The notes below the pieces were generated by a model, which made no database searches, was not told the DNA's origin, and worked only from the letters and a program-made list of their open reading frames with translations. From positions 17,360,001 to 17,424,000 of the forward strand of contig NC_135769.1 in NCBI RefSeq assembly GCF_052425735.1: DNA of 64,000 bases. The letters are read 5' to 3'. The stretch comes from Oculina patagonica (lineage: Eukaryota). Both the position numbers and the translations under genes were made by a program. This document shows, one piece after another, positions 2,488-64,000 of the stretch (position 1 is the first letter of the stretch; every line of letters begins with the position of its first letter).

Positions 2488-2489
<2 letters not shown>

Positions 2490-2527
<38 letters not shown>

Positions 2528-5618: not shown

Positions 5619-5947
5619 ATGGAGCTATACGAGAGAATGCAAGAACGTACACATCGCGAGTATCATAAGGATCCGCGCCGGGATATTTTCGCGAATGGCG
5701 CCTTTCATGATGGCATTTCGACGGCCGCAGACAGTGACGAAAATTTGGCGCACAAAAAGGGTCTCAAAGAGCACAGTAGCGTTTATACGTTTGTATGGAC
5801 GTTGCTGTTTGCGGTTGTTTTAATTGTGGAGAACATTTTTCACTTTAAACTCTTCGAAAACTGCCAAGCGTCTATCGTTTTCTACTGGTTGGAAAGTTGT
5901 GTTATTGCTCTGTTCTTCAGATTTTGGGGAAGAAAACGAGTTCGAAG
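5619..5947 (+). other. Orphan duplicate of exon 1 of the SLC35-like transporter gene (partial gene or alternative first exon)
   Basis: Near-identical to 28492..28823; open frame from ATG to an intact donor AG|GTACGT, phase 2 (329 nt); no downstream exons within the unit. Confidence 0.75.
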
Positions 5948-6649
5948 GTACGTGAAATATAAGCTTAAAGTTCTTGGATATTATTAGGGAAAGAGGGAAG
6001 ACCTTCACTGTAGAAAACCCTGCCACCTGGAAGACTTGACCGAAAATTACGCTGCTTTAGAAGAGCAAGCTTAATAACAATTGAATCATCGGGCAATATT
6101 TCTCGTATTTTATGTATTATTTATGAAGAATAACAAATCTCTAACGCCTGGTTCACATTTAATAACGGCAGAACGGCAAGGTCACGCAAACGCCAAACAA
6201 CACAACAGGCGTAGTAATTAATCAATAGAAATCGATATCGAAAATCATTCGATACAATTCGATAGCACTCGATATTGATTAATAACAATCGAACTTACAG
6301 AAAAAATATTATTGATTTTTATCCATTAGCAATAATCCACAATTCATCTTGCCGGGTACACATGTAGTCGATGACAGTTTGGAGTCATGTTGTTTTAAGT
6401 ATATGACTATTTTTATGGACTGAAGATGTCATTATTGCTATTATTTGATATGAATGTAGGTCATTTTGCCCTCAAGATGATAAGCCCTTAACTTGGTCAG
6501 ACTGATATAATTGCAGGATAATGCCCCAGTAATGCCCCAGGCCGACAGATTGTCCAAAAAATTGAACAGTTGGCAGAGAGGCGATGCTTCGAAGGCAACT
6601 GAAATTTGGAGGAAAATCTTTTAACCAAGGGCAGCAAGGGCCTTATCCT

Positions 6650-7230
6650 CCAGCATATCAGCCATAAAAGGGGTTTGTTTAATTTTTTACACCTCTGATT
6701 AACTTCTACAACATGTTTACCAGAACAATATTTCATTATTGTCCAAAGTCCAATATTCATGCTTTTTACCCTCTGATAACCGTTACATACTCTCACGTCA
6801 AACACATCATGCGGACAAAATTGGGCAACATTATTAGGCAGCATGCCCCAGCATTATTCCCCAACATATCAGCAAACCAGAAATTTGTTTATCTTAAACA
6901 CCTTTGATTAATTTCTGCGACAAATATTCAGCGTCCAAGAGCCAATATAATTGTCACTAACACTCACGTCAAATACATCATGCGATACGAAATTAGACAA
7001 TTAATATCAAGCAGCACGCCCCATCATTATCCTTCAGCAAATCAGCAAGCCAGAAAGTGGTTTGTTTATTTAATACACCTGTGATTAATTTCTACGACAT
7101 GTTTAATAGACAATAAGGCCAAAGGCCAATATATTTGTGCTTTTAACCGAACGATTATTATTGTTACAAACTCTTACGTCAAACACATCATGCATTACAG
7201 ATTGGACAATGAATATCAGGAAGCACACCC
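6650..7230. repeat. Imperfect tandem repeat of ~175-210 bp, about 3 copies (also in units 2 and 4)
   Basis: Recurrent ATCAGC...TTTGTTTA...ACACC..TGATTAA...CTCACGTCAAACACATCATGC blocks at ~6655, ~6865 and ~7040. Confidence 0.6.
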
Positions 7231-7573
7231 CATCTGATTTGACATCTTGTTCAATTTCATAGAAGAGAACAAAAACAATCATGGTTATGATTTAAGGCCT
7301 ATTTTTTTTAATCAAATCATGGTTAATGGCATGTCAAGAAATCTTTCAAGATTCAAAAAATCTACCAAAATATCCTTTTAAAGGATCTTTGGTAGGGGCT
7401 TGAAGATCTTGAACAGTCCTTCTCAAACTCATTAATACCATCATCAAATTAAAACAAAGAAAATCATAACCGTTAAGGAGATTTGGATACCCAGTCTTTA
7501 TTGGCATAGATTTTTACGATTTTATTTTTCCATTTACTCCATAGTTTTGGTTTTGATTGAGAAGATATATTAA

Positions 7574-8193
7574 GATGGAATCCACTAGGAAGTCGAGTAA
7601 TATTTATAAAAGTTGGACAAAAATCAAGTACCAGAATAATTTAAATCCTATTGCGTTATTTCCTACCCTTAATAAAAGATAAAGATGTAAGTAATTATCC
7701 GTGATATACACCAACAACAATTTCTTATCAGAGTCTGAGAAAATGAATTTCAAAGTTCACAAGGTATAGCCAAAATCTCACGTGTAGCCATTTTGGAAAT
7801 TCGTCTTAAGCGATTCAGTGGAATTCAGCGGAACTTCGAAATTTGTTTTCGATGTTTGGTGTTGTTAGAAAAGATTTCTTTTGATAAGATATTTGAAGCA
7901 GTAACAAAAAATTTTGCAATAAGGTGGAAATAATTCTGGTACAACAATTTCTTATCAGAGTCTGAGAAAATGATATTCAAAGTTCACAAGCTATGGGCAA
8001 AAGCTCACATCTTTTAAGCAATTCATGGGAATTCAGTGGAACTTTGAAATTAGTTTTCGATGTTTGGTGTTGTAGAAAAGATTTCTTTCGATAAGATATT
8101 TGAAGCAGTAACACAAAAGCTTGCAATCAGGTGTAAATAGTTTTGGTACATAATTTTGTCCAATAACTACTCGAAGTCCTGGCGGATTTCCTC
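7574..8193. mobile_element. TTAA-flanked non-autonomous DNA transposon (Kolobok/piggyBac-type) with an internal ~230-bp direct repeat; copies at ~16394..17013 and ~31795..32418
   Basis: TTAA-GATGGAATCCACTAGGAAGTCGAGTA ... TACTCGAAGTCCTGGCGGATTTCCTC-TTAA (imperfect TIR); ACAACAATTTCTTATCAGAGTCTGAG occurs twice inside. Confidence 0.6.
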
Positions 8194-8402
8194 TTAAACA
8201 CTCAAGACAATGTTTCATCGGCTATCCAAAAACCTCTAATTTCATCAAAAAATACTCCGCTGCGCGTCATATTTTCAACTCTCTTCTTGGTGTTTGGATA
8301 TCCTGATAAAACACTGTCTCACCACAGTCACAAATAAATAGGGTGGCCCGCCAACACCAACGGTATTTGCATATCATCACTAACCGTTAGTTGGCTTTAA
8401 TC

Positions 8403-8893
8403 TAGGGTTGCAACGATACATTTTCTCACAATACGATACGTACCTCGATACAAGTGCCACGATACGATACACGATACGATACAACATTACATAAAACTGA
8501 CAAGTGTTATAATTTTACTAATTTCTGTTGGTAACTCAGTTTTTTCCACTGTATCAGCAGCGAAACTTATTTGCAAAGTGAATTTTTCAGGAACCGCATG
8601 TTTTTGCTTGTGGGCACACAAGGCTGTGTCAGTCGACAACTAATTGTCGCATCTTTAAAGAATATATGATCGGAAGTGAAGCAGAATGGAACTTCCTTGT
8701 CCCACAGGTTAACAAATCGCTATTGAGGGCTTTGACTTGGGTTAAAAAACAGTAAAAACAGTAATTTCTGAAAGTTGCTGAAGAATATTTTATTGTTTCA
8801 CGATACTGCGATATTTTGTTCAAATACCGATATTCGTATCTTGACAAAAAATATCGCGATTCACCGGTGCACCGGTGTATCGTTGCAGCCCTA
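8403..8893. mobile_element. hAT-type MITE (491 bp)
   Basis: TIR TAGGGTTGCAACGATACA / TGTATCGTTGCAGCCCTA; 8-bp TSD CTTTAATC on both sides; subterminal CGATAC repeats. Confidence 0.85.
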
Positions 8894-9699
8894 CTTTAAT
8901 CTCAGGAGGACTGGTATGCAGTTGGAAATACCAAGTTTTAATTTGGAATGGGAAGGTTGTCTGATACACCCAAAGTGAGACGATTTGACTATAGCACTTA
9001 TAATTAACAAATTGACTTGAATCAATCAAATTGTCAAAACTTTTCTGCCTTGATGTTGACCTGTTATTCTAGAATTCAATTTCCGCAACAGTTAGAAAAC
9101 ATAGGGGATCCACAATAAGTTCTACAGGATCCAAGATTTGACTTATTTGAAGGCCAAGATTCAGGATTTTTGATGGAAAAGGGAGCGAGATTTGGGGTTG
9201 AAATAATGAACTGGACACATGAATTGGCGATTTTACAAGGCGAGATTCAGGACTCCAGTGACAAAAAATAATGTGGTTGCATAGAAAATCAAGTTGTGAT
9301 CTTCGTGAACACCGCAAAAAGCTGCACAAAGCATTTATTATGACTTACATGAGTTACCTGTATTTCCATGTGTGCCAGTTACATGGGAAAAAAGAAATAA
9401 GCTTACAGCTTATTGTCGGTGACCAAAGACTTCAAGACCAGTGCCGAGTGCAACACCCACTGCAAGTCTTTTTATCCCCGGGGGGGGGGGGGGGGCACTC
9501 AACAAAGTTTTGTATGGGGAGGAGGCTCCGCCCCGAGGTCCAACCCCTTACTCTTTTATGTACCATTTTGACAGAAAAGGTACCCCTTTCATAAACCTTT
9601 TTTTTTTTAAAAAGGTATCCTTTTCATATACCTACATGATATTACTTATACCTAAAACAGGAAGTCTTCCTGTCAATTTTATGTAGCACTTAAAAAATT

Positions 9700-10498
9700 T
9701 GTTATTTTGATTTTCCTAAGCGAAGGAATAGTTCCAACGCTGTGGCATGCCATTTATGATATTAAAACCAAAAAGTTTCGGAACTCTATAGGTTTTAATA
9801 TTTCGGCTTTTACTGTTCATGTAAGTAACGGATATGAAGACTGCAGAAACAACGATTCCAATGAACTGCCGAGTGAACAGCCAAACATGTGCATAAGCAC
9901 GTGAAAGGTCTGAACAAACAGACTGAGCAGACGAAGGTCGAAAGTGCAGAAAACCATCCATAAGACTGACTGACTAGAGGGTTTACTGACTAGATGGTAA
10001 AGAAAAAAGTCCTAATAGTTATGTTTGTGCAAGTAACCGACGCAATGAGTGGCTATGCTGGTTTACTTAGTAGTGATTTGTTGTCCCTATTTAATTTTAT
10101 CGTTTAGGTAAATTACCATTGTTAGTTTATAATAGTGAGCTCACTAATAAGTTTTCCTGGATCGGAGTAGATTGTCATGAAAGCTCAGAAAGTCTGCCAT
10201 TCTCGTCAGGGGCACAGTGACAGACCCCTTAGAGAGATCATTATTTCGCGAAGAGTAAGCTAGAAAAAAAAGGGGGTAAGCGCGCGCGGGAAGACGTTAC
10301 ATTGATCTTTTATCCGTATTGTAACGTATCGATAAACTAAAAGCCAAATCAGGGTAAATCTCTCTAAACCACGTTTCAAACTGTGGTACCACAGCTGGCC
10401 CTACGTGGCTGAGCTAACTGTTTACAATCTATACCGATGAAACGTTTACAAAAAGTTCAAAACCCTAACCCTAACCCTAACCCTAACCCTAACCCTAA
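9700..10498. other. Duplication-junction filler (~800 bp) ending in (CCCTAA)6
   Basis: Homology to the parental unit-4 sequence stops at TAAAAAATT (9699 vs 33930); the filler is absent there; telomeric hexamers at 10463..10498 abut the start of the next unit. Confidence 0.85.
10463..10498 (-). repeat. Interstitial telomeric repeat (TTAGGG)6
   Basis: Six perfect CCCTAA units; a second identical tract at 19285..19320. Confidence 0.95.
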
Positions 10499-10972
10499 GG
10501 TTTCTAGCTAGTTGGTGTAATGTGCAAGGTAAGGCACTTTGTTAATACAAGAATACTTACTCAGCTTTATCAAACAATTATTCCCCACTTTCTTTGTTTC
10601 TTATTGTTGTCTAGTTTGGGGCAAAACTTACAAAAACAGCGTTAAATAAATGTTACAAAAGAAAGCCATTTGTCTAATAATGTTTATTCTCTCAACTTGA
10701 TGCTCACACTAATGTTGTCATCGCCCAGTTCTAATAAGTAAACCCTCAAGGACCCTGGTCAGCCATTGTTTTTGTTTTACATACGGGAATTTCGGTACTA
10801 TATTTTTCGCGGAGCGTGTCTAAACGAAAGAGATCACTGTGAAACTGCTAAATTTTATTAAACAGACTTCCAGTAACACAACTTACAGCAATGCAACAAG
10901 GTTTTGCTTCGCCGGACAATTTTTATAATTTCGATGGCATCGAAAATGGCGGAGGGTGACAAGGGTCCTTTC

Positions 10973-11221
10973 CAGGGGCGGATACAGGGGGGGTGGATAG
11001 GGTGGATATCCACCCCCCATTTTTCAGTAAAAAAAAATTCGAAATGTCACTTTATTTGAAATAGAAAATAAATAAATAAAGAAAAATTAACTCTCGCTCA
11101 TGCTGGTTGTTGTTACGCCACGTTTCGCCGTCTGCCGCCACTTAGGGTTAGGGTTAGGGTTAGGCCCTAATGGTCTGCCATCCACCCCCCCCCCCCTTTT
11201 GAAATCCTGGATCCGCCCCTG
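10973..11221. mobile_element. MITE with CAGGGGCGGAT termini, 5-bp TSD and internal TTAGGG repeats (copies at 19795..20048 and, corrupted, ~2201..2420)
   Basis: CAGGGGCGGATACAGG ... CCTGGATCCGCCCCTG flanked by CTTTC on both sides. Confidence 0.75.
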
Positions 11222-11292
11222 CTTTCACGATCTCATTTGACTCTAAATCTTTTATGTTATGCATCATCGACTTTCGATTTGGTAGTCTTCTA

Positions 11293-11294
<2 letters not shown>

Positions 11295-11330
<36 letters not shown>

Positions 11331-11803
11331 ATGCTTTAGAAGACTTACACTACAGTACATTACATTTGTTTAACCCTACATATATTACATTGCACAGTAC
11401 ATTATATTATGTTACACAAACATACTACAATACTTACGTTATACGTTACAAAAGTAATTACGGTACATGTTAAACACCTAATTTCCAAAAAACTTAATAA
11501 TCTTATACATTATATTACAGAGAGTTGATAATTGGCTTCCACTTTTCAACGTGAGTTTTCAGTTTGTTATTTTTTAGGGCAATGGATCGCTCAATTGATT
11601 CAATGTATTTTATTTTTATGATAACATGTGGTAAAAGGGGTAGAATATTCTTGAGCCGGTTAGAGTAAATGACCTGTTTACCAATAATAATAATATGATT
11701 TAGAAGGGTCCAATTGAGATTCTTTTGAGCTAGGCCGAAAATGATATCGTAATCATTTAAAAAGTCAATATTTATGTCTATGGATTTTAGCCAAAGAATA
11801 GTA
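11295..11803 (-). mobile_element. Duplicate of the 5'-truncated Tx1/L1-like insertion
   Basis: Poly(T), TSD GTAGTCTTCTACA at 11282..11294 and 11804..11816; near-identical to 2490..3000. Confidence 0.85.
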
Positions 11804-12560
11804 GTAGTCTTCTACATGTTCTAGGGATTTTCGAATCCTTTACATCTAGGTCTAATTTTCGCACAGATTATGGTTAAGTCAATATTTAGCGGATTTATTG
11901 GACGAAAATTTTGGAATGAAATGGACACTAGGCTACCAACATATTCTGTAATATTTTATTTTGCCTTCCTGTATTTTTTACTACAATAGTCTGTTGTATT
12001 TACAAACCTCTCAAAGTTCTGATATGTAAACTTTTACTTAGCTTTTTTATTCTATTGTCTCTCTTAGTTATAGCTCTCAGAGTTATTTTAGATGTCCAGT
12101 TTCCATTTTCTAGTTTAGATAAAAAATGTTGTAAATAATCATATTTTAATTCATGTTACAAATAATTGGTTGTTGTTGCATGTTGTTGTTGCTGCTGACC
12201 ACAATTGGTTGTTGTTTCATGTTGTTCTTACTGCTGACCACGATCTGCAATTGAAGGAGCGAAAAAAATTGAAGATATAATCGAAACTCACAAAAAAATA
12301 GTGACAAAGGAATACAATATTAGAACAATTTTTTGCTTTCACTAACAACTTGTTCTTGAAAACCTTATTTACAAGGAAATTCGACCACAAATCGACCGAC
12401 AAAAACACAGACCTTCTTTTCCGTCTTTAGAGTCTTTGAGAGCGCAAGCATGGCAAAAACCGTGTTCAAAATTTTAAGTTCAAATGGATGTCAAAAAGGA
12501 TGTTGGGACAATACTACAAAAGCTACACGAAACCTCAAACTTCTTTCATCTTCCTACATT

Positions 12561-13778
12561 TCAATCATCCTCAATGTGGTCGTTACAGTCAGCATAAGGA
12601 ACAGCGCCAAACTCCTGGGCTGGTCGGAACAACTTTGTAGATCTCCACCAGTCCTCTAAATTATACCTCTCTAACAGTTCATATAAATTCTTCCAGAAAA
12701 TATATATCATATCATCAGCAACTAGAATTGGTCTGTCATAATCTCTGGCTTCTTTCCTGCTTGGTCTACATTTTGCGGACCATGGCTTAGGTGGATGGTA
12801 GCGTGGACCACCGGCAAAATGGAAAGAGTTCAGGGGTCTGTAGATAATGAGTCTGATGTTGAATGAAAAGGGTAGTGCCTTCCAGTTACCAGCATCAGCA
12901 TAATAATGCCACAGCAAAACTTGATCATCAGGACAAGTATCTATTTTTGTTGTTTCCAGCCACAGGTCCATAATTTCCTGGTAGTACTTGGTGTCTGGTC
13001 TGAAAACCAGGAGTCCTGCATTGAAGCATGGATCCACTATTCCTGGTCGGGCACAAGGTGCAGCAGCAAAGTCGTCTGGAATGTCGAACAGTCGATCAAT
13101 GTTTGTCATCAATATGTAATCAGCATCAACATAAATGATTTTGGAAAATTCTGTGTAGTTCCAGGCGTGGAATCGAGTGTGTGTTCCCTTTATTCTGTAT
13201 CCAAGTGGCTTCCCAAGCCACCCACTGTTGCGGTCACCACCCAATTTAGCATCCAGCCAGTTACAGTCCATTTCTTCAACCAAACGAGTGTTCCAACCAA
13301 CGCTTTGAAGCGCTTTCCGTGTAGCCTCGCTCACTGTTTCCGAAATTAACGCGATCATGTTCTTCTGGCAAGAAAACGTGCGTATTGAGTGACCAAGAAC
13401 CAACGCAGCGGAAGCAAAATTCTCGTCGACCACGATGGTCAGCCATGTAACGTCGCTTCTAGATTTCACGTTCTCTTTGCACCAATCTTGGCCAAAACGA
13501 CTTTCAATTTGATACATTCTCCATTCCTTGTGAGCCAACTCCATTTTGCTCTCCTCACGCCTCTGCTCATAATTCGTAGCTTCTGAAATAATCAACCTCG
13601 TGTATCTAAAGAAATACGCAAGAATGAGCGGTCTCCACACAACGAGAAAAATCACCACAGTTAAGATCGGAATGAGTGTTATGGCGAAGATTGTTCGACG
13701 GGTTCCTTTCTTTCTTGTTCGTACATTCTCCATAGTTTGGTGTGATTCGGATTGTTTACTTGACGAAGAACGTAACAT
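12561..13778 (-). CDS. GT8-family glycosyltransferase copy 2 (405 aa, protein identical to copy 1)
   Basis: Translation identical to 3741..4958. Confidence 0.9.
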   Translation of the reverse strand: MLRSSSSKQSESHQTMENVRTRKKGTRRTIFAITLIPILTVVIFLVVWRPLILAYFFRYTRLIISEATNYEQRREESKMELAHKEWRMYQIESRFGQDWCKENVKSRSDVTWLTIVVDENFASAALVLGHSIRTFSCQKNMIALISETVSEATRKALQSVGWNTRLVEEMDCNWLDAKLGGDRNSGWLGKPLGYRIKGTHTRFHAWNYTEFSKIIYVDADYILMTNIDRLFDIPDDFAAAPCARPGIVDPCFNAGLLVFRPDTKYYQEIMDLWLETTKIDTCPDDQVLLWHYYADAGNWKALPFSFNIRLIIYRPLNSFHFAGGPRYHPPKPWSAKCRPSRKEARDYDRPILVADDMIYIFWKNLYELLERYNLEDWWRSTKLFRPAQEFGAVPYADCNDHIEDD

Positions 13779-14438
13779 TTTTCAACGAATATCTCAATGA
13801 CGCAGGTTTATTTTTTTTTGGCGGAATCCACTAGCGTTGCGCACCATCGATCAGTCAGTCGTGTGCATCAGTCCGAGACATTCCTTCTTTTTCAAACTTT
13901 CTTCTCTTTTAAATATTTTAAGGTTCGTTGAAAGCGTAATCAAACACTGTAGGAAAACAAGAAATGGCACTAGCAACGTTTTAGGAAGTCTTTAATGATT
14001 TACGTAAATTAAAATTTTCAATTAAAAGTTTGTTCGCTGGTGAGAGTGGCGTGATCTTACTGCTCTGACGTCATATCCGTTTTTACACTAAGTAACAAAA
14101 TACAATGCTTATTGTTCAAATGGCCAGCTTTTTCATGAGAAAGTTTTGCACAAGATTTCACAGTTTTTATATAAATTCTGATACAACATAAATTTTAGCC
14201 AATCAGAGCGTGCGCAAAACTAAATCGTGAGAGAAATTATCACTTCCCGCGAAATCCCCACGAATTAGTGCCCAGGACTACTCGGACTTCGCATTGTGGG
14301 AAGAACGTGAATTTGCACATGTCTGTGATGTTTACAACGAGAACCTATTATCACCTGATTTTTCCTTGCTTACTCATGGAAAACTTATTGACCTACAACT
14401 TCCGGACTCGATACGTTGGAACTTAAGTCGTATACGGA

Positions 14439-14767
14439 ATGGAGCTATACGAGAGAATGCAAGAACGTACACATCGCGAGTATCATAAGGATCCGCGCCG
14501 GGATATTTTCGCGAATGGCGCCTTTCATGATGGCATTTCGACGGCCGCAGACAGTGACGAAAATTTGGCGCACAAAAAGGGTCTCAAAGAGCACAGTAGC
14601 GTTTATACGTTTGTATGGACGTTGCTGTTTGCGGTTGTTTTAATTGTGGAGAACATTTTTCACTTTAAACTCTTCGAAAACTGCCAAGCGTCTATCGTTT
14701 TCTACTGGTTGGAAAGTTGTGTTATTGCTCTGTTCTTCAGATTTTGGGGAAGAAAACGAGTCCGAAG
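14439..14767 (+). other. Second orphan duplicate of transporter exon 1
   Basis: Same translation as 5619..5947; donor AG|GTACGT intact. Confidence 0.75.
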
Positions 14768-17222
14768 GTACGTGAAATATAAGCTTAAAGTTCTTGGATA
14801 TTATTAGGGAAAGAGGGAAGACCTTCACTGTAGAAAACCCTGCCACCTGGAAGACTTGACCGAAAATTACGCTGCTTTAGAAGAGCAAGCTTAATAACAA
14901 TTGAATCATCGGGCAATATTTCTCGTATTTTATGTATTATTTATGAAGAATAACAAATCTCTAACGCCTGGTTCACATTTAATAACGGCAGAACGGCAAG
15001 GTCACGCAAACGCCAAACAACACAACAGGCGTAGTAATTAATCAATAGAAATCGATATCGAAAATCATTCGATACAATTCGATAGCACTCGATATTGATT
15101 AATAACAATCGAACTTACAGAAAAAATATTATTGATTTTTATCCATTAGCAATAATCCACAATTCATCTTGCCGGGTACACATGTAGTCGATGACAGTTT
15201 GGAGTCATGTTGTTTTAAGTATATGACTATTTTTATGGACTGAAGATGTCATTATTGCTATTATTTGATATGAATGTAGGTCATTTTGCCCTCAAGATGA
15301 TAAGCCCTTAACTTGGTCAGACTGATATAATTGCAGGATAATGCCCCAGTAATGCCCCAGGCCGACAGATTGTCCAAAAAATTGAACAGTTGGCAGAGAG
15401 GCGATGCTTCGAAGGCAACTGAAATTTGGAGGAAAATCTTTTAACCAAGGGCAGCAAGGGCCTTATCCTCCAGCATATCAGCCATAAAAGGGGTTTGTTT
15501 AATTTTTTACACCTCTGATTAACTTCTACAACATGTTTACCAGAACAATATTTCATTATTGTCCAAAGTCCAATATTCATGCTTTTTACCCTCTGATAAC
15601 CGTTACATACTCTCACGTCAAACACATCATGCGGACAAAATTGGGCAACATTATTAGGCAGCATGCCCCAGCATTATTCCCCAACATATCAGCAAACCAG
15701 AAATTTGTTTATCTTAAACACCTTTGATTAATTTCTGCGACAAATATTCAGCGTCCAAGAGCCAATATAATTGTCACTAACACTCACGTCAAATACATCA
15801 TGCGATACGAAATTAGACAATTAATATCAAGCAGCACGCCCCATCATTATCCTTCAGCAAATCAGCAAGCCAGAAAGTGGTTTGTTTATTTAATACACCT
15901 GTGATTAATTTCTACGACATGTTTAATAGACAATAAGGCCAAAGGCCAATATATTTGTGCTTTTAACCGAACGATTATTATTGTTACAAACTCTTACGTC
16001 AAACACATCATGCATTACAGATTGGACAATGAATATCAGGAAGCACACCCCATCTGATTTGACATCTTGCTCAATTTCATAGAAGAGAACAAAAACAATC
16101 ATGGTTATGATTTAAGGCCTATTTTTTTTAATCAAATCATGGTTAATGGCATGTCAAGAAATCTTTCAAGATTCAAAAAATCTACCAAAATATCCTTTTA
16201 AAGGATCTTTGGTAGGGGCTTGAAGATCTTGAACAGTCCTTCTCAAACTCATTAATACCATCATCAAATTAAAACAAAGAAAATCATAACCGTTAAGGAG
16301 ATTTGGATACCCAGTCTTTATTGGCATAGATTTTTACGATTTTATTTTTCCATTTACTCCATAGTTTTGGTTTTGATTGAGAAGATATATTAAGATGGAA
16401 TCCACTAGGAAGTCGAGTAATATTTATAAAAGTTGGACAAAAATCAAGTACCAGAATAATTTAAATCCTATTGCGTTATTTCCTACCCTTAATAAAAGAT
16501 AAAGATGTAAGTAATTATCCGTGATATACACCAACAACAATTTCTTATCAGAGTCTGAGAAAATGAATTTCAAAGTTCACAAGGTATAGGCAAAATCTCA
16601 CGTGTAGCCATTTTGGAAATTCGTCTTAAGCGATTCAGTGGAATTCAGCGGAACTTCGAAATTTGTTTTCGATGTTTGGTGTTGTTAGAAAAGATTTCTT
16701 TTGATAAGATATTTGAAGCAGTAACAAAAAATTTTGCAATAAGGTGGAAATAATTCTGGTACAACAATTTCTTATCAGAGTCTGAGAAAATGATATTCAA
16801 AGTTCACAAGCTATGGGCAAAAGCTCACATCTTTTAAGCAATTCATGGGAATTCAGTGGAACTTTGAAATTAGTTTTCGATGTTTGGTGTTGTAGAAAAG
16901 ATTTCTTTCGATAAGATATTTGAAGCAGTAACACAAAAGCTTGCAATCAGGTGTAAATAGTTTTGGTACATAATTTTGTCCAATAACTACTCGAAGTCCT
17001 GGCGGATTTCCTCTTAAACACTCAAGACAATGTTTCATCGGCTATCCAAAAACCTCTAATTTCATCAAAAAATACTCCGCTGCGCGTCGTATTTTCAACT
17101 CTCTTCTTGGTGTTTGGATATCCTGATAAAACACTGTCTCACCACAGTCACAAATAAATAGGGTGGCCCGCCAACACCAACGGTATTTGCATATCATCAC
17201 TAACCGTTAGTTGGCTTTAATC

Positions 17223-17713
17223 TAGGGTTGCAACGATACATTTTCTCACAATACGATACGTACCTCGATACAAGTGCCACGATACGATACACGATACGAT
17301 ACAACATTACATAAAACTGACAAGTGTTATAATTTTACTAATTTCTGTTGGTAACTCAGTTTTTTCCACTGTATCAGCAGCGAAACTTATTTGCAAAGTG
17401 AATTTTTCAGGAACCGCATGTTTTTGCTTGTGGGCACACAAGGCTGTGTCAGTCGACAACTAATTGTCGCATCTTTAAAGAATATATGATCGGAAGTGAA
17501 GCAGAATGGAACTTCCTTGTCCCACAGGTTAACAAATCGCTATTGAGGGCTTTGACTTGGGTTAAAAAACAGTAAAAACAGTAATTTCTGAAAGTTGCTG
17601 AAGAATATTTTATTGTTTCACGATACTGCGATATTTTGTTCAAATACCGATATTCGTATCTTGACAAAAAATATCGCGATTCACCGGTGCACCGGTGTAT
17701 CGTTGCAGCCCTA
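17223..17713. mobile_element. hAT-type MITE, duplicate
   Basis: Same TIRs and CTTTAATC TSD as 8403..8893. Confidence 0.85.
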
Positions 17714-22300: not shown

Positions 22301-22620
22301 TTTACACTTGGTGACAAAATAAAAGGCTTATTGTTCGTATGGCCAGCTTTTTCATAAGAAAGTTTCGGACAAGATTTCACAGTTTTGATACAAATTCTGA
22401 TAAAACATAAATTTTAGCCAATCAGAGCGTGCGCAAAACTAAATCGTGAGAAGAATATCACTTCCCGCTAAATCCCCATGAATTAGTGCCCAGGACTACT
22501 CGGACTTCGCATTGTGTGAAGAACGTGAATTTGCACATGTGATGTTTACAACGAGAACCTATTATCACCTGATTTTTCCTTGCTTACTCATGGAAAACGT
22601 ATTGACCTACAACTTCCGGA
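19321..22620. repeat. Duplication unit 3 (short, 3.3 kb; lacks the LINE insertion and ends just before the transporter ATG)
   Basis: Homology to unit 1 runs from GGTTTCTAGC to AACTTCCGGA (22620), followed by ~58 bp of unrelated sequence and the start of unit 4. Confidence 0.85.
20849..22040 (-). pseudogene. GT8 glycosyltransferase copy 3, probable pseudogene
   Basis: +1 frameshift in an A-run at ~21972-21978, and a 27-bp in-frame deletion at ~21189 that removes DQVLLWHYY (CPDDQVLLWHYYADAG becomes CPDADAG), including the conserved DQ motif. Confidence 0.8.
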
Positions 22621-25790: not shown

Positions 25791-26637
25791 TCTAATTAGT
25801 AGACCTTCACAATCTCATTTGACTCTAAACCTTTAATGTTATGCATCGACTTTCGATTTGGTAGTCTTCTAGGGATTTTCGAATCCTTTACATCCAGGTC
25901 TTATTTTTGTTTACCAACCATTCGCACAGATTATGAAAAAAGTCGATATTTAACGGATTTATTGAACGAAAATATTGGAATGAAATTGACACTAGTCTAT
26001 CAATCTTGTCAGCTTATTCTGTAATATTTCATTTTGCCTTCCTGTATCTTTTACTACAATAGTCTGTTGTATTTACAAACCTCTTAACGCTCTGATTTGT
26101 AAACTTTTTCTTTGCTTTTTAATTCTATTGTCTCTCTTAGTTATAGCTCTAAGAGTTATTTTAGATGCCCAGTTGCCATTTTCTAGTTTAGATAAACATG
26201 CTGTAAATAATTAAAGTACAATTCAAATTCATGTTACAAATCATCGGTTGTTGTTGCTGACCACTGTGAAAATAACATTTTTTCTACGCTCTCTAGTAGA
26301 AGCGAAGCAATTTGAAGATAATCGAAACTCACAAAAAAAATAGTGACAAAGAAACACAATATTAGAACAAGTTTTTTGCTTTCACTAACAACTGATATTA
26401 ACAATATAGAATATCTTTCATTCTGCTTGTTCTTGAAAACCTTATTTACAAGGAAAAACGATCACAAATCGACCGACAAAAACACAGACCTTCTTTTCCG
26501 TCTTTAGAGTCTTTGAGAGCGCAAGCATGGCAAAAACCGTGTTCAAAATTTTAAGTTCAAATGGATGTCAAAAAGGATGTTGGGACAATACTACAAAAGC
26601 TACACGAGACCTCAAACTTCTTTCGTCTTCCTACATT

Positions 26638-27810
26638 TCAATCATCCTTCATGTGGTCGTTACAGTCAGCATAAGGAACAGAGCCAAACTCCTGGGCTGG
26701 TCGAAACAACTTTGTAGATCTCCACCAGTTCTCTAAATTATACTTCTTTAGCAGTTCATATAAATTCTTCCAGAAAATATATATCATATCATCAGCAACT
26801 AGAATTGGTCTGTCATAATCTCTGGCTTCTTTTCTGCTTGGTCTACATTTTGCAGACCATGGCTTAGGTGGATGGTAGTGTGGAGCTACAGCAAAATGGA
26901 AAGAGTTCAGAGGTCTGTAGATAATAAGTCTGACATTGAATGAAAAGGGTAGTGCCTTCCAGTTACCAGCATCAGCATAATAATGCCACAGCAAAACCTG
27001 ATCATCAGGACAAGTATCTATTCGTGTTGTTTCCAGCCACAGGTTCATAATTTCTTGGTAGTACTTCGCATCTGGTCTGAATACCAGAAATCCTGCATTG
27101 AAGGCTGGGTTTACCACACCGGGTCTTGAGGAGGGTGCAGCAGCGAAGTCATATGGAATGTCGAACAGTTGATCAATGTTTGTCATCAACATGTAATCAG
27201 CATCAACATAAATGATTTTGGAAAATTCTGTGTAGTTCCAGGCGTGGAATCGAGTGTGTGTTCCCTTTATTCTGTATCCAAGTGGCTTCCCAAGCCACCC
27301 ACTGTTGCGGTCACCTCCCAATTTAGCATCTAGCCAGTTACAGTCCATTTCTTCAACCAAACGAGTGTTCCAACCAACGCTCTGCAGTGCTTTCCGTGTA
27401 GCCTCGCTCACTGTTTCCGAAATTAACGCGATCATGTTCTTCTGGCAAGAAAATGTGCGAATGGAGTGACCAAGAACCAACGCAGCAGAGGCAAAATTCT
27501 CGTCGACCACGATGGTCAGCCATGTAACGTCGCTTTTAGATTTCACGTTCTCTCTGCACCAATCTTGGCCAAAACGACTTTCAATTTGATACATTCTCCA
27601 TTCCTTGTGAGCCAGCTCTAGTTTGTTCTCCTCAAGCCTCTGCTCATAATTCGTAGCTTCTGAAATAATCAACCTCGTGTATCTGAAGAAATATGGAAGA
27701 AAGAGCGGTCTCCACACAACGAGAAAAATCACCACAGTTAAGATCGGAATGAGTGTTATGGCGAAGATTGTTCGACGTGTTCCTTTCTTTCGTGTTCGTA
27801 CACTCTCCAT
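26638..27810 (-). CDS. GT8-family glycosyltransferase copy 4 (390 aa, diverged paralog)
   Basis: Intact ORF with TM anchor, DAD, FNAG, DDQ and KPW motifs. The upstream ATG used in copies 1-3 was removed by a 15-bp deletion at ~27849. Confidence 0.9.
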   Translation of the reverse strand: MESVRTRKKGTRRTIFAITLIPILTVVIFLVVWRPLFLPYFFRYTRLIISEATNYEQRLEENKLELAHKEWRMYQIESRFGQDWCRENVKSKSDVTWLTIVVDENFASAALVLGHSIRTFSCQKNMIALISETVSEATRKALQSVGWNTRLVEEMDCNWLDAKLGGDRNSGWLGKPLGYRIKGTHTRFHAWNYTEFSKIIYVDADYMLMTNIDQLFDIPYDFAAAPSSRPGVVNPAFNAGFLVFRPDAKYYQEIMNLWLETTRIDTCPDDQVLLWHYYADAGNWKALPFSFNVRLIIYRPLNSFHFAVAPHYHPPKPWSAKCRPSRKEARDYDRPILVADDMIYIFWKNLYELLKKYNLENWWRSTKLFRPAQEFGSVPYADCNDHMKDD

Positions 27811-28491
27811 ATTTTGGTGTGATTCGGGTTGTTTACTTGACGAAGAACGAATACCTCAATGACGCAGGTTTATTTTTTTTTTGCGGAATCCACTAGCGTT
27901 GCGCACCATCGATCAGTCAATCGTATGCATCAGTCCGAGACATTCCTTCTCTTTCAAACTGTCTTCTCTTTTAAATATTTTAAGGTTCGTTAAATCGTAA
28001 TGAAACACTGTAGGAAAACGAGAAATGGCAATAGCAACGTTTAAGGAAGTCTTTAATGATTTACGTAAATTAAATTTTCAATTAAAAGTTTGGTCTCTGG
28101 TGAGAGTGGCGTGATCTTACTGCTCTGACGTCATATCCATACAAAACACAATGCTTATTGTTCGTATAGCCAGCTTTTTCATAAGAAAGTTTCGCACAAG
28201 ATTTCACAGTTTTTGCACAAATTGGGATAAAACATAAATTTTAGCCAATCAGAGCGTGCGCAAAACTCAATCGTGAGAGAAAATATCACTTAATTCCAGC
28301 GAAACCCCACGAATTAGTGCCCAGGACTACTCGGACTTCGCATTGTGCGAAGAACGTGAATTTGCACATGTTTGTGATGTTTTAATACAACGAGAACCTA
28401 TTATCACCTGATTTTTCCTTGCTTACTCATGGAAAACTTATTGACCTACAACTGCCGGACTCGATACGTTGTTACTTAAGTCGTATACGGA
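27811..28491. promoter_or_regulatory. Putative bidirectional promoter shared by GT8 copy 4 and the complete transporter gene
   Basis: 681 bp between divergent ATGs; CRE palindrome TGACGTCA at 28126..28133 and CCAAT at 28245..28249, both conserved in all four units. Confidence 0.6.
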
Positions 28492-31400
28492 ATGGAGCTA
28501 TACGAGAGAATGCAAGAACGTACACATCGCGAGTATCATAAGGATTCTCGCCGCGATATTTTCGCGAACGGCGGGTTCGCCGTCCATGACATTTCGACGG
28601 CCGCAGACAGTGACGAAAATTTGGCGCACAAAAAGGGTCTCAAAGAGCACAGTAGCGTATATACGTTTGTATGGACGTTGCTGTTTGCGGTTGTTTTAAT
28701 TGTGGAGAACATTTTTCACTTTAAACTCTTCGAAAACTGCCAAGCATCTATCGTTTTCTACTGGTTGGAAAGTTGTGTTATTGCTCTGTTCTTCAGATTT
28801 TGGGGAAGAAAACGAGTCCGAAGGTACGTGAAATATAAGCTTAAAGTTCTTGGATATTATTAGGGAAAGAGGGAAGACCTTCACTGTAGAAAACCCTGCC
28901 ACCTGGAAGACTTGACCTAAAATTACGCTGCTTTAGAAGAGCAAGCTTAATAACAATTGAATCATCGGGCAATATTTCTCGTATTTTATGTATTATTTAT
29001 GAAGAATAACAAATCTCTAACGCCTGGTTCACATTTAATAACGGCAGAACGGCAAGGTCACGCAAACGCCAAACAACACAACAGGCGTAGTAATTAATCA
29101 ATAGAAATCGATATCGAAAATCATTCGATACATACTAGTTATGCAACGCTTTCGAGTGGTATACTATGGAATATCCCACGAGTCACTTGTATTTTCTCGG
29201 TATACACACGAGCCTTTAGGCGAGTGTGTATACCAAGAAAATACAAGTGACAAGTGGGATATTCCATATTATCACATATATAGCGAGAATTTTGGGCAAT
29301 AAATCTCCCAAATAGATTTCTATATTTGCTATATTTCACATGTGAGAAAAGCGATACGTCCAATCAGCTTCGCGTATAGCTTTCTTCACATGTGAAAAAT
29401 ATAACCAATCAGCATCTAGAGTGGAACGACCCAACCAATCAAAGCACGAGAACTCAAATGGTTTCCAACGAGGTTGAGCAAACAGCGAGCGGCAAGTTTG
29501 TTCCCTACGGCAGTTTATGCTTTGAAAATATGGCTACACGGTTTGTTCCTTTAAAAAACTTTGTCTTTAGAGTACTTTATGGAAAGGCAAGCAAACAGGA
29601 ACTCGCTAAGCAAAACCGAAAGAATACAGTAATGAGATTATAACAATAAAAATCATTCTTCAAAGGCGGAGCGAAGACAAGCGAAGTGTCGATACGTGAA
29701 AGCGAAGACAAGAATTTCTTCAAAACTTACAACACATCCGCGGACTTTCTAAGAATATTCAAGCACTAGCACCCTCGGGAACACCATGGTAAAGTAGATT
29801 GCATTTTTGAATGTGGATTTGCGTCGCAATTATTGCCTAATTAACTGACTCCTTGTATGTAATATCGCAATTTTGTTCAAAATTCGCCTGCGTGTTTAGT
29901 TGATTCGCTTGTGGCGACGCTTCCTCGATGCGATACCAAAACTTTTGCTTTCAAAAAGTAACGCAATGTGTTTAATTAAATAAAGTTTTTGCAGAAGATT
30001 TTGTTGGCAGTAATTTTTCTTATTTGATTAAAAGTGGTTTCGCTTGAAAAGCGATGTGCATTTGCCTGCTTTGTTTTTCCTACCGCTAGGTCAAACTGTA
30101 ATATGTCAAAGGTTTATGTATTACTTGACATGAAAAATCGCGTAAACTTTACAATGCTTGAATTCTCGTTATATATATAATAAACAAATTACAGCATAGA
30201 AAGTGTTTGAACGGATTTTTATTACTCGTTGCAAAACTTTGAAACTCTGTGCTGCTCTCGTTGTTTTATTTCGAAAAATCCGTACGTTGCACTTTCTATG
30301 AAGTAATCTATATGTATACCACGAGAAAGTGTTGTATAACTATTTTATACCATGCCATAGAAAATACGCTTACTAAATTTCGTCGAGAATACAATCGCAG
30401 CGCACGATGGGAAGGTTGGGTTGAATACCGTCGAATATACAACGGCTTTCCTGTATTCTGATTGGCTGTATTTTCTATGGCATGGTATAAAATTCGATAG
30501 CACTCGATATTGATTAATAACAATCGAACTTACAGAAAAAATATTATTGATTTTTATCCATTAGCAATAATCCACAATTCATCTTGCCGGGTACACATGT
30601 AGTCGATGACAGTTTGGAGTCATGTTGTTTTAAGTATATGACTATTTTTATGGACTGAAGATGTCATTATTGCTATTATTTGATATGAATGTAGGTCATT
30701 TTGCCCTCAAGTTGATAAGCCCTTGGTCAGACTGATATAATTGCAGGATAATGCCCCAGGCCGACAGATTGTCCAAAAAATTGAACAGTTGGCAGAGAGA
30801 CGATGCTTCGAAGGCAACTGAAATTTGGAGGAAAATCTTTTAACCAAGGGCAGCAAGGGCCTTATCCTCCAGCATATCAGCCATAAAAGGGGTTTGTTTA
30901 ATTTTTTACACCTCTGATTAACTTCTACAACATGTTTACCAGAACAATATTTCATTATTGTCCAAAGTCCAATATTCATGCTTTTTACCCTCTAATAACC
31001 GTTACATACGCTCACGTCAAACACATCATGCGGACAAAATTGGGCAACATTATTAGGCAGCATGCCCCAGCATTATTCCCCAACATATCAGCAAACCAGA
31101 AATTTGTTTATCTTAAACACCTTTGATTAATTTCTGCGACAAATATTCAGCGTCCAAGAGCCAATATAATTGTCACTAACACTCACGTCAAATACATCAT
31201 GCGATACGAAATTAGACAATTAATATCAAGCAGCACGCCCCATCATTATCCTTCAGCAAATCAGCAAGCCAGAAAGTGGTTTGTTTATTTAATACACCTG
31301 TGATTAATTTCTACGACATGTTTAATAGACAATAAGGCCAAAGGCCAATATATTTGTGCTTTTAACCGAACGATTATTATTGTTACAAACTCTTACGTCA

Positions 31401-34400
31401 AACACATCATGCATTACAGATTGGACAATGAATATCAGGAAGCACACCCCATCTGATTTGACATCTTGCTCAATTTCATAGAAGAGAACAAAAACAATCA
31501 TGGTTATGATTTAAGGCCTATTTTTTTAATCAAATCATGGTTAATGGCATGTCAAGAAATCTTTCAAGATCCAAAGAATCTACCAAAATATCCTTTTAAA
31601 GGATCTTTGGTAAGGGCTTGAAGATCTTGAACAGTCCTAATTCTCAAACTCATTAATACCATCATCAAATTAAAACAAAGAAAATCATAACCGTTAAGGA
31701 GATTTGGATACCCAGTCTTTATTGGCATAGATTTTTACGATTTTATTTTTCCATTTACTCCATAGTTTTAGTTTTGATTGAGAAGATATATTAAGATGGA
31801 ATCCACTAGGAAGTCGAGTAATATTTAAATATTAAAGTTGGACAAAAATCAAGTACCAGAATAATTTAAATCCTATTGCGTTATTTCCTACCCTTAATAA
31901 AAGATAAAGATGTAAGTAATTATCCGTGATATACACCAACAACAATTTCTTATCAGAGTCTGAGAAAATGAATTTCAAAGTTCACAAGGTATAGGCAAAA
32001 TCTCACGTGTAGCCATTTTGGAAATTCGTCTTAAGCGATTCAGTGGAATTCAGCGGAACTTCGAAATTTGTTTTCGATGTTTGGTGTTGTTAGAAAAGAT
32101 TTCTTTTGATAAGATATTTGAAGCAGTAACAAAAAAGTTTGCAATAAGGTGGAAATAATTCTGGTACAACAATTTCTTATCAGAGTCTGAGAAAATGATA
32201 TTCAAAGTTCACAAGCTATGGGCAAAAGCTCACATCTTTTAAGCAATTCATGGGAATTCAGTGGAACTTCGAAATTAGTTTTCGATGTTTGGTGTTGTAG
32301 AAAAGATTTCTTTCGATAAGATATTTGAAGCAGTAATGCAAAAGCTTGCAATCAGGTGTAAATAGTTTTGGTACATAATTTTGTCCAATAACTACTCGAA
32401 GTCCTGGCGGATTTCCTCTTAAACACTCAAGACAGTGTTTCATCGGCTATCCAAAAACCTCTAATTTCATCAAAAAATACTCCGCTGCGCGTCATATTTT
32501 CAACTCTCTTCTTGGTGTTTGGATATCCTGATAAAACACTGTCTCACCACAGTCACAAATAAATAGGGTGGCCCGCCAACACCAACGGTATTTGCATATC
32601 ATCACTAACCGTTAGTTGGCTTTAATCTAGGGCTGCAACGATACATTTTCTCACAATACGATACGTACCTCGATACAAGTGCCACGATACGATACACGAT
32701 ACGATACAACATTACATAAAACTGACAAGTGTTATAATTTTACTAATTTCTGTTGGTAACTCAGTTTTTTCCACTGTATCAGCAGCGAAACTTATTTGCA
32801 AAGTGAATTTTTCAGGAACCGCATGTTTTTGTTTGTGGGCACACAAGGCTGTGTCAGTCGACAACTAATTGTCGCATCTTTAAAGAATATGTGATCGGAA
32901 GTGAAGCAGAATGGAACTTCCTTGTCCCACAGGTTAACAAATCGCTATTGAGGGCTTTGACTTGGGTTAAAAAACAGTAAAAACAGTAATTTCTGAAAGT
33001 TGCTGAGGAATATTTTATTGTTTCACGATACTGCAATATTTTGTTCAAATACCGATATTCGTATCTTGACAAAAAATATCGCGATTCACCGGTGCACCGG
33101 TGTATCGTTGCAGCCCTACTTTAATCTCAGGAGGACTGGTATGCAGTTGGAAATACCAAGTTTTAATTTGGAATGGGAAGGTTGTCTGATACACCCAAAG
33201 TGAGACGATTTGACTATAGCACTTATAATTAACAAATTGACTTGAATCAATCAAATTGTCAAAACTTTTCTGCCTTGATGTTGACCTGTTATTCTAGAAT
33301 TCAATTTCCGCAACAGTTAGAAAACATAGGGGATCCACAATAAGTTCTACAGGATCCAAGATTTGACTTATTTGAAGGCCAAGATTCAGGATTTTTGATG
33401 GAAAAGGGAGCGAGATTTGGGGTTGAAATAATGAACTGGACACATGAATTGGCGATTTTACAAGGCGAGATTCAGGACTCCGGTGACAAAAAATAATGTG
33501 GTTGCATAGAAAATCAAGTTGTGATCTTCGTGAACACCGCAAAAAGCTGCACAAAGCATTTATTATGACTTACATGAGTTACCTGTATTTCCATGTGTGC
33601 CAGTTACATGGGAAAAAAGAAATAAGCTTACAGCTTATTGTCGGTGACCAAAGACTTCAAGACCAGTGCCGAGTGCAACACCCACTGCAAGTCTTTTTAT
33701 CCCCGGGGGGGGGGGGGGGGGGGGGCACTCAACAAAGTTTTGTATGGGGAGGAGGCTCCGCCCCGAGGTCCAACCCCTTACTCTTTTATGTACCATTTTG
33801 ACAGAAAAGGTACCCCTTTCATAAACCTTTTTTTTTTTTAAAAAGGTATCCTTTTCATATACCTAAATGATATTACTTATACCTAAAACAGGAAGTCTTC
33901 CTGTCAATTTTATGTAGCACTTAAAAAATTAAAATGATGCAGCCATTAGGTGTGTCTGTTTGAAATATTTCAATGGAAGGCCCTTTTAAATTACCTCGAT
34001 GACAAAATTCTGAAAATTCCCTTTCATATACTTAAACTTGTGAAAACCCTACCCTTTGCTACACCTGAAGAATAGGTCATTATAGGGAGTACTGCACGGG
34101 CTTTTAGTGTTGAGGCAAGGAATTAAGAAAAAATAAATGGTCGGGATCAGGGTAAGCCAAAAAAAACCTTCAGGATTATGGGATTTAGGGAAAATTTGTA
34201 CCAATCGCTCCTGTTACGAAGTCGGAATTTATGATCGAATGGAAAGTACCCCAACACTTCTAAATATTAATTCTCTCATTAATCTGAGGGCCGTGGGTTT
34301 GTCAGTCACAAGACTGTTAAGTGCAACCCTTGTCAAATAATGTCAATTTATTTTATTTTTATTTAAATACTAATAGATGAAATTTTTAATCCTTTATATC

Positions 34401-37400
34401 TTTTATTATTGTATTATTATATTGTAAATAGTTTGTTTTAATTTTTATGTCATTTTAGCTACTCTTGTCATTGTATGTAAATTATAATCAGTATTATTAT
34501 CATATTTTTTCACATGCACATTTTAACGAGCCTCATTGCTTCTCTGTGTTATGTGGGTAAATAAACTATTGTACTATATTGTATTGTTATTCTAAAAGAC
34601 TTGGGGGAAATAAGAAGAAAATTACCAACATTGCATAATTTTTGGCAAAGAGACATCACAAGGGGGTGGAAACTGGGAGAGAAAGGTACAGGAAGAGTAT
34701 GTTTGAGTACCCCCCCCCCCCCCCAACATTCTCTTCCCCAGAGCCTCTTAGCTGGCAGAACCTGGGGCACAAGGAACAAGTGGCTCTGGGGACCCATGAT
34801 TTGATTGACTAGAACTTTAACAAAGGAAATTTAAATCTTGCAAATCAAATCAGCTGTTTTAAAATTCCTATGTTTTAAAATGGTTGATTTGATTGGTTAG
34901 ATTTAAATTCTCTTTTTAAAAAATCTAGCCAATCAAATCATGTGTCCCCACAGCCACTTGTTCCTCATGCCCAAGGCTCTGGGGACGAGAATGAGGGCCC
35001 CCCCCCCAGGAACTAGTACAAAAAGCCCAGAAAAAGCTTGTCAGGATACCATAAAGTTCCTACAGTAATGAGGTAACAACCCTACAAAAGTAGAGATAAA
35101 ATTTTGGGATTGTTAGCAAATCCCAAAAATACTGATCATGACCCTCTAAAAGTAACAATTAATGCTCCAAAAGAAGTGACCTGAAACATGACTTGTTATT
35201 AAAGCAAACAGTGGAAATAACAGATAACACAAGCTGTACCAAACTGATCATTATTATTAAATGAGCCTTTCCCCAAGGCAGTTTGTACTGATGTAATACA
35301 AATTCTTTTGAACAAGATTTCTCAAATTCATCTCTGCATGTATTCAAAACATTTTTGATTTTAATAACACGGCTCCGCCTACACATGGTACATGTTAAAT
35401 AAATGAAAGTAGCCCCCCCCCCCTTCTAACTTATGAAGGAAGAAGGGTCATTCCTTTTGGACCTTTACTGTAATTCACCCCAGTAAATTTCTTTCTTGTT
35501 ATTAATCATGATAATTTTTTGTCATATTTTCCTTTTGCTGTTTAGCTTCAGGAGTCAAGTGAGCTATTTTGGGCCTCTTCTTTTCCTACATGTTGCTGTT
35601 GTCACTGCCTTTGGACTGGATTTTAATACCTCTCCATTTGGCCTTTCAGCCGGCTCTGAGTCATACCTGGTTTGTACCAATTTTTGTCATTATTTTAAAA
35701 TAGCTTTGAAGTAAGAAGCTTATGGTATATTATTAAATTCTCAACCTCGGATATTGCATTTCTAGCTTTCTGATTGGTTCACTGAATCCCGGTTATCAGC
35801 TTGTATACCTATGTTTGACCTTATATGGGAAATGAGTGCAGCAAGTGCCGCTCAGGGTAAAATTTTTCTGCGGGAAGCAACAGTTTCATCAGAACTCAGA
35901 GACTCAAAGGACAGTGCAGAATGCAATGGAGTCGACGACTGAAAGTATTGTTTTATGTTCGTGTTTATTTGCCTTATTTTACTTGCAATTAGATGTTGAA
36001 ACACCACTTGTATTCCTTCCCGAGTTTTTGTTACGCTAATCTTTGCAAACGTAACACGATTCTTCTGTTCGTTTGTAACAAGATACATGTACTTTTGTTG
36101 TTTTCCTTGAAAATGCTGTAACGTGACCCTTTGTTTATTTGTCTCTTTTTTTGTTTCACGGCGACATCGATGGCATTTGTCTTTCTTTCAATAATAAAGC
36201 CAATTATTTAACTTTAATTAAATTAAGTTGCGGTTTAAACTGCACGAAAGACGTTTCTCAAAAAGTAAAGAGCAAATCTAGTCAAAAACATCTCTTTCGA
36301 AAGGTTTTTTTAAAACGCAATACAGGTAGGATGTTTGTTTCCTGGTTATCAGGAGTTTCACGCCGAAAATCCCAGTGCAAGTTTTTGCATTCCTATTTAC
36401 GAAAGCGCTGTAAAAGTCTAAAAATCTAATTTAATTAATTTGCGGTTTTCACTTGGCGCCACGAAGTCTGCAGGAATCCTACCACAAACACGCAATACAA
36501 GCGATGTTCATGAGAGTTCCAGCAAAAAACGTAGACTACACTGCGCATGCGTTTGGCGTAAAGTACGTTGCCCTAAAACGTCGAGTAGTACCACAAGGAG
36601 AGCAAAGAGTTTTCTGAAACAAATATGTACTTTTGAGAATCTTTATATGAAAGTAACGTAGATGTGCTCCAGGTTTTACCTAGGGGTACGGTCAGGTGCT
36701 CCCCACCCGCACCCCCTCCACAAGAAATAATTAATTAATTGATATTAATTAATTAATTGGTGATTAAAAGTTTACACCGCGTTAGCGGTCTAGTGGTTTA
36801 GGGGTTTAGCAAACGCCAACCCACCAAACTATCACAATAGTGCATTCTGCACTAAAAATGGTTGAAAACAGCAAATTTGGCGAGCTTTATGAACAAGAAA
36901 TAATCAGCGGTGCCTACAAAACCACAGAAATGCCATAGTAAAATTAACTACGCAAAACAAAAGGATTGATGCAAAAAGTTTAATTAATAATACTTGTAAA
37001 TGCAATACAAGAGCGAGTGAATAAAGTAGAAAAGCAGCAAATAATTTACGAAAGAACAGCAAACTGACACAGTTTCATTCATTGTATGTCATAAAATTAG
37101 GCTCAGCACTTCTGTAAAGTTAAATACCTTTTAATCTTGGTCTTGTTCTTTTATGCTTCAATAAACCTGTTCCACTTTGAGGTCAATTTCGCTTCAAATA
37201 ATATAGCAGTCTTGATGACAGCCGTGAAGCCGTAAATTACAAGTACAATGTAAACACTTGCTTTGTTCTACTTGCACAAGATGTGTAGTTTCCAGAAAAG
37301 CTTTTGCTTCGGACCATCCTGTAAATCTTAACTGATGTCACAATTTCCAGAATATATAGACGACTTTAGAGGAGATTATTGGATGAAAATCTTGGGAAGA

Positions 37401-63973: not shown

Positions 63974-64000
63974 TGATCTATAATCATTTTGTTTTTAAAC

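Follow-up and report, generated by a model that had tools for sequence, protein, structure and literature searches.

Three first exons and one set of constant exons

We analysed a window of 64,000 nt from the Oculina patagonica assembly (C12:17,360,001-17,424,000); positions below count from the first letter of this whole stretch. The window contains LOC144632462, a gene with a predicted membrane protein product. Exon 1 of this gene is present three times on the plus strand, each time head-to-head with a GT8 gene and separated from it by an intergenic promoter region. Exons 2 to 5 are present once. Copies of exon 1 share the number of the adjacent GT8 copy. The elements of the gene are listed here.

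4959-5618, unstranded: divergent intergenic promoter, copy 1, delimited by alignment
5619-5947, plus strand: exon-1 copy 1; 109 codons plus 2 nt; differs from copy 2 only by T at 5942
13779-14438, unstranded: divergent intergenic promoter, copy 2; 99.8% identical to copy 1
14439-14767, plus strand: exon-1 copy 2; C at 14762
27811-28491, unstranded: divergent intergenic promoter, copy 4; 91% identical to copy 1
28492-28823, plus strand: exon-1 copy 4, the proximal copy; 110 codons plus 2 nt; first exon of RefSeq isoform X1
35546-35669, plus strand: exon 2 (constant); preceded by a strong pyrimidine tract; boundary the same in Pocillopora
38415-38657, plus strand: exon 3 of the gene model
41154-41303, plus strand: exon 4 of the gene model
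42679-42909, plus strand: exon 5, ending in a TGA stop; first ATTAAA at 43367

A sequence-only reading had proposed that exon 1 occurs three times on one strand, with a separate promoter, start codon, open frame and phase-2 donor at every copy, ahead of exons 2-5, which occur once. All of these elements were recovered. The three copies lie at exactly the coordinates first assigned to them. A start codon, an open frame and the phase-2 donor AAG/GTACGT are present in 3/3, and a duplicated 660-bp divergent region precedes every copy. Alignment of the promoters identified a TGACGTCA motif and a CCAAT box, retained in 4/4 promoter copies including that of unit C (see below), which lacks exon 1. A search of the whole assembly returned exactly three matches to exon 1, one set of exons 2-5 (35546-42909) and one 66%-identical paralog 8.4 Mb away. 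Hence, in this genome, a full-frame mRNA beginning with exon-1 copy 1 or 2 must use 35546-42909. The paralog, at C12:8.96-8.99 Mb, had no GT8 match nearby in a search of the Oculina genome itself.

Joining to exon 2 at 35546 is in frame for all three exon-1 copies, as had been claimed. Each copy, together with exons 2-5, gives an unbroken frame of 358 or 359 codons. The model built with copy 1 or 2 (358 amino acids) is 100% identical to RefSeq XP_078347247.1, isoform X2 of LOC144632462. The model built with copy 4 is the same as XP_078347246.1 (isoform X1) and to KAL9956360.1. RefSeq already models the locus as two isoforms. The NCBI pipeline usually issues extra isoforms only where alignments support an alternative intron. 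Literature searches found no genome or annotation paper treating this locus. Exact look-ups of two protein sequences returned no record from the contig collection, and no Logan-derived Oculina member of the membrane protein family was found in the protein database.

The three copies differ little. Between copies 1 and 2 there is a single synonymous base, 6 nt 5' of the donor (5942 T, 14762 C); copy 4 has C at the corresponding position, 28818. At 28746 copy 4 has A, against G at 5870 and 14690 in copies 1 and 2. Copy 4 differs from both by 13 substitutions and a 3-nt in-frame insertion. Eleven of the 13 substitutions are packed into 41 nt (14493-14533 in copy 2) and give rise to two tail peptides. 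Thus, the two N-terminal tails quoted in the sequence-only reading were borne out, one belonging to copies 1 and 2 and the other to copy 4. The peptides of copies 1 and 2 are identical; copy 4 changes ~6 residues of the N-terminal tail. Both helices encoded by exon 1 are the same in all copies. In the 234 nt common to the exon-1 copies, 3/3 substitutions are synonymous and cannot be assigned to a lineage.

The genes facing exon 1 belong to a set of four open reading frames on the minus strand.

3741-4958, minus strand: GT8 copy 1; single exon, 405 amino acids
12561-13778, minus strand: GT8 copy 2; 405 amino acids, protein identical to copy 1; within the intron of a transcript initiated at exon-1 copy 1
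20849-21988, minus strand: GT8 copy 3; open reading frame of 379 amino acids
26638-27810, minus strand: GT8 copy 4; 390 amino acids, 92% identical to copy 1

All four were assigned to GT8 (PF01501), with scores of 40.3 bits for copy 1 and 51.2 bits against a curated cut-off of 24.3. The nearest solved relative is glycogenin-1, matched by copy 1 with an E value of 4e-25 over residues 98-366. Hence, the genes are glycogenin-like. A DxD-type motif (DAD) is present in the GT8 open reading frame. Transcripts initiated at the upstream exon-1 copies would run antisense through the GT8 copies downstream of them. This part of the earlier proposal follows from the geometry of the locus.

Tandem units and the origin of the array

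Self-BLAST of the window identified an ~8.8-kb tandem repeat. Its units and the sequence at their joints are as follows; none is assigned a strand.

2408-11295: unit A; GT8 copy 1, promoter, exon-1 copy 1, ~3.8 kb of intron 1, filler and X segment
11213-20122: unit B; content as unit A, with GT8 copy 2 and exon-1 copy 2
20109-22620: unit C, partial; GT8 copy 3 and promoter; homology stops 33 nt before the ATG, without exon 1
25806-33930: unit D, the proximal and original unit; GT8 copy 4, promoter, exon-1 copy 4 and intron 1 with an insertion
9700-10510 and 18523-19332: junction filler of 811 bp and its second copy, at the A-B and B-C joints

Unit A aligns with unit B over 8.9 kb at 99.4% identity, a repeat well beyond chance. 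In unit D, segments 25806-29132 and 30487-33930 match the repeat at 93.7% and 98.5%, respectively. The divergence between A and D is a mosaic. To the left of ~28590, a stretch that takes in GT8, the promoter and exon 1 as far as about nucleotide 95, identity is 90-96%. To the right, from about 5714 onward in unit A, identity is ~99%. The likeliest cause, we infer, is gene conversion inside the GT8 array. Judged from the alignment, the cluster of 11 substitutions and a 3-nt insertion in the copy-4 tail is the edge of the older unit-D segment. Intron 1 of unit D alone carries a 1.35-kb insertion (29133-30486), which units A and B lack.

The right-hand breakpoint of the duplication lies inside intron 1, at 9699/33930. 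The filler is a high-copy repeat, with a contig depth of 10^4-10^5 in run X15, one of four public runs described below. The X segment beside it (window 9400-11200) is likewise very high-copy. The duplication joints thus sit in transposon-like sequence. Such a repeat at the junction, together with an A-B identity of 99.4-99.9%, is compatible with units A and B being one unit falsely duplicated in the assembly. We consider this artefact very improbable. The window contains no N runs, the A-B and B-C junctions share the filler, and units A and B are separated by scattered substitutions and indels, with the GT8 3' flank at 97.3%. Moreover, without unit B, units A and D would still give two exon-1 copies.

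The array continues outside the window. At least 11 GT8 copies are present on C12, and exon 1 accompanies only those in units A, B and D. Within the 35 kb upstream (C12:17326646-17359240) there are six further GT8 copies or pseudogenes on the minus strand, some of them interrupted by stop codons. One inverted copy is found 5 kb beyond the end of the window (C12:17428850-17429995). These additional copies show 85-93% identity, and neither the promoter nor exon 1 accompanies any of them. Two more GT8 copies lie elsewhere, at C12:18.64 Mb and C4:25.2 Mb.

The ancestral arrangement is indicated by related corals. In Pocillopora verrucosa (L006, 3587-15932), two diverged GT8 genes stand head-to-head with one exon 1, and intron 1 is 3 kb long. 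The P. verrucosa ortholog is full-length (363 amino acids, five exons) and its exon 1/2 boundary is as in Oculina. In a ~90%-identical relative (L007, 848-4925), the contig has GT8 and a single exon 1, which is separated from exon 2 by an intron of 1.9 kb. Since a single exon 1 lies beside GT8 in both related corals, the triplication is young and derived. Conversely, the head-to-head pairing of GT8 and the membrane protein gene, found in all three corals, must be old. The pair, kept in both Pocillopora and Oculina, may function as a glycosylation module. From these comparisons, triplication of exon 1 is a lineage-specific by-product of GT8 amplification. The ~90%-identical relative has bases of both exon-1 types and a local deletion; hence, the polarity of the tail patch cannot be called.

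We propose the following origin. The glycogenin-like GT8 array of O. patagonica went on expanding, and the latest ~8.8-kb duplications began from the GT8 copy head-to-head with LOC144632462. Because that copy was the one duplicated, the shared promoter (660 bp), exon 1 and the first ~3.8 kb of intron 1 were copied too, as the repeat structure shows. The GT8 copies have in this way become nested, in antisense, within a long first intron.

Probable use of the upstream first exons

Each upstream cassette most likely serves as an additional promoter and first exon of one gene. Partial tandem gene duplication would have given LOC144632462 alternative first exons that are spliced to exon 2. We place the probability of this at about 0.7. 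A first exon has a donor and no acceptor, so a transcript from an upstream copy would skip the exon-1 copies downstream. Its own donor would probably be joined to the first good acceptor, that of exon 2 at 35546. RefSeq isoform X2 speaks for such splicing, as do contigs whose match ends exactly at the donor. The resulting products would differ only in the 5' untranslated region and in ~6 residues of the cytosolic tail. Given that copies 1 and 2 encode the same peptide and that the tail difference is so small, the outcome would be promoter multiplication, not protein diversification.

Contigs of four public runs (X1, X2, X12 and X15) were aligned to positions 9000-14999. Contig depths are a poor measure of expression. 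Record 31 of run X2 is an RNA-like contig of 1,637 nt. It begins within promoter copy 2 and matches 14330-14767 with 4 mismatches and no gap. The match ends exactly at the exon-1 donor, 14767, and the next 1,199 letters are unplaced within 9000-14999. Across the same interval, copy 4 differs from copy 2 by 16 mismatches and 7 gap columns. Hence, the run X2 contig carries an exon 1 of the copy-1/2 type. Subtracting the 748 nt of exons 2-5 from the 1,199 letters leaves 451 nt, and the stop codon is followed after 458 nt by the first ATTAAA. This length agrees with the model without proving it.

Record 15 of run X12 breaks at the same position, 14767, and has a copy-4-like exon 1 (9 mismatches and a 3-letter gap). 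RNA-like contigs extend 1.0-1.2 kb past the exon-1 donor. In run X1, the exon-1 contig ending at 14767 has a depth of 91, and a contig continuing into the intron has a depth of 8. These two contigs overlap by 30 letters, as expected for a branch in the assembly graph. A contig of the same run covers 13821-14767, including the entire promoter between the GT8 5' end and the exon-1 donor, apart from a skip of 44 nt. This would mean either that the two divergent transcripts overlap at their 5' ends or that DNA is present in the run.

The upstream exon-1 copies could instead be inert. They would then be silent, terminated in intron 1, or cryptically spliced and degraded, and only the 28823-35546 junction would be functional. 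One candidate cryptic acceptor lies inside a GT8 gene.

12960-12984, plus strand: strong cryptic acceptor with a good pyrimidine tract, and a short terminal coding segment, both inside GT8 copy 2 and antisense to it

GenBank entry KAL9956357.1 (117 amino acids) joins copy-1 exon 1 to this acceptor as a two-exon orphan gene, which favours inert copies. However, the 1,199 nt of the run X2 contig occur nowhere in 9000-14999; hence, this contig does not use 12960. Among the joints listed for the four runs in that interval, none led back to 12960. An equivalent of the acceptor is present at 4139-4164; in GT8 copy 3 (21220-21245) it is mutated and the AG is lost (cag to cgc). Expression of a copy-4-like exon 1 in run X12 also fits inert upstream copies, as does the 0.1-0.6% divergence of units A and B, which are too young for selection to have acted. 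Conversely, RefSeq isoform X2 is the copy-1/2 model. The upstream promoters are nearly the same as each other, and that of copy 4, at 91% identity, is clearly active. We regard inert upstream copies as unlikely.

A second concern is allelic or species confusion. If the RNA donors had a proximal exon 1 of the copy-1/2 type, or a different array, isoform X2 would be a product of in silico mapping. The run X2 contig has 4 mismatches to the window in 438 nt, and differently labelled runs carry different exon-1 types. Run X15, which is DNA-like and has the same organism label as run X2, has a 6-nt promoter deletion of its own. In addition, the copies hardly differ over the final 230 nt of exon 1, so junction reads are ambiguous. 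Set against this is the position of the tail patch, at the right end of the left segment of unit D that is 4-10% divergent. A proximal allele of the copy-1/2 type would need a different mosaic. We judge such confusion improbable, and somewhat more so than inert copies.

Several points weigh against use of the upstream exons as alternative first exons. The contigs were compared with 6 kb of the window (9000-14999) and exons 1 and 2 are 6.7-30 kb apart, so the junction from 5947 or 14767 to 35546 extends outside that interval. That the runs are RNA is a presumption, and the organisms behind them carry coded labels. The sequence of run X2 is ~1% different from the window and may derive from another individual or a sister species. 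If the proximal exon 1 of that animal is of the copy-1/2 type, neither the contig nor cross-mapped RefSeq reads are proof of upstream use. In the GenBank submission, copy 1 forms a dead-end gene of two exons. Finally, the contigs cannot give expression levels.

The sequence-only reading had also suggested that activating a GT8 copy would drive the membrane protein gene. Extended further, GT8 promoters would co-fire this gene, antisense transcription from an upstream unit would damp downstream GT8 copies and their promoters, and one GT8 unit at a time would be expressed, as for protocadherins, together with a putative Golgi sugar transporter. We consider this extended scheme highly unlikely. 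In run X1, contig depth for GT8 far exceeded that for exon 1; in runs X2 and X12 the order was inverted. These depths, a weak guide, do not suggest tight co-expression of the two genes. Were co-firing to occur, the dose of membrane protein would rise with the number of active GT8 units.

Comparison with known gene structures and the encoded protein

A precedent is provided by PEP1 of Arabis alpina. There, a full-length copy and a partial copy in tandem generate two overlapping genes, with full-length transcripts that share downstream exons (Albani et al. 2012, PMC3527215). The likeness is that partial tandem duplication places a second promoter and first exon upstream of one set of later exons. 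The Oculina locus differs in having three first exons and in the content of the duplicated unit, which also holds a whole divergent GT8 gene, now intronic and antisense. Furthermore, differential expression of PEP1a and PEP1b is demonstrated, whereas the Oculina locus is known here from sequence models and contigs.

UGT1, GCNT2 and the clustered protocadherins are clusters of multiple variable first exons (PMC1885805). They resemble the Oculina locus in origin, by tandem duplication, and in layout: tandem first exons that have individual promoters and donors but lack acceptors lie upstream of constant exons. Their variable exons encode whole divergent functional domains and are old and specialised. 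In contrast, the Oculina first exons are 0.3-5% divergent and vary in ~6 tail residues, and two of the three encode one protein. PEP1 is the closer precedent. The interpretation offered by the sequence-only reading thus divides. Its cassette architecture stands, and in-frame splicing is supported by the identity of the models to isoforms X2 and X1 and by the contig breaks at the donor. The UGT1A/protocadherin-like description fails on content: one peptide is common to copies 1 and 2, the change in copy 4 is confined to the tail, and the helices are identical.

The gene structure is therefore of a known kind, and the locus is a very young example of it (0.1-2% divergence). It shows how a variable-first-exon gene begins. 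A duplication breakpoint in intron 1 leaves orphan cassettes of promoter and first exon, for which the old exon 2 is the only splicing partner. As a side effect, complete genes of the opposite strand end up antisense inside a new long intron. The structure also explains why the annotations disagree, with RefSeq giving two isoforms and GenBank an orphan 117-amino-acid gene.

The product of LOC144632462 is predicted to be a coral-restricted membrane protein of about 10 helices. Approximately 15 members of the family were detectable among 1.8 billion representatives, and those with names are all from stony corals. The AlphaFold2 (AF2) model, built from a 12-sequence alignment, has about ten long helices, with a mean predicted local distance difference test (pLDDT) score of only 42. 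Nucleotide-sugar transporters of the DMT superfamily (SLC35) have a ten-helix fold built from two 5-helix repeats. The sequence-only reading called this protein a transporter, a label without support from hidden Markov models. Pfam searches with separate exons, full-length orthologs and 12 family members gave no match, for the full-length and family sequences even at E values up to 10, including to NST, TPT, UAA and EamA. A profile search against PDB sequences gave no match for the membrane protein. The ten nearest named neighbours in a language-model comparison all belong to DMT/NST clusters (0.96-0.97). We treat the suggested NST-like character as a lead rather than a finding.

Separate direct repeats lie past the membrane protein gene. 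Here, 44094-55215 matches 51578-63980 at 73-92% identity, with an offset of about 7.5-10 kb. From its sequence, this region resembles a further duplicated pair of genes. Both GC content and AT skew are elevated at 44-48 kb.

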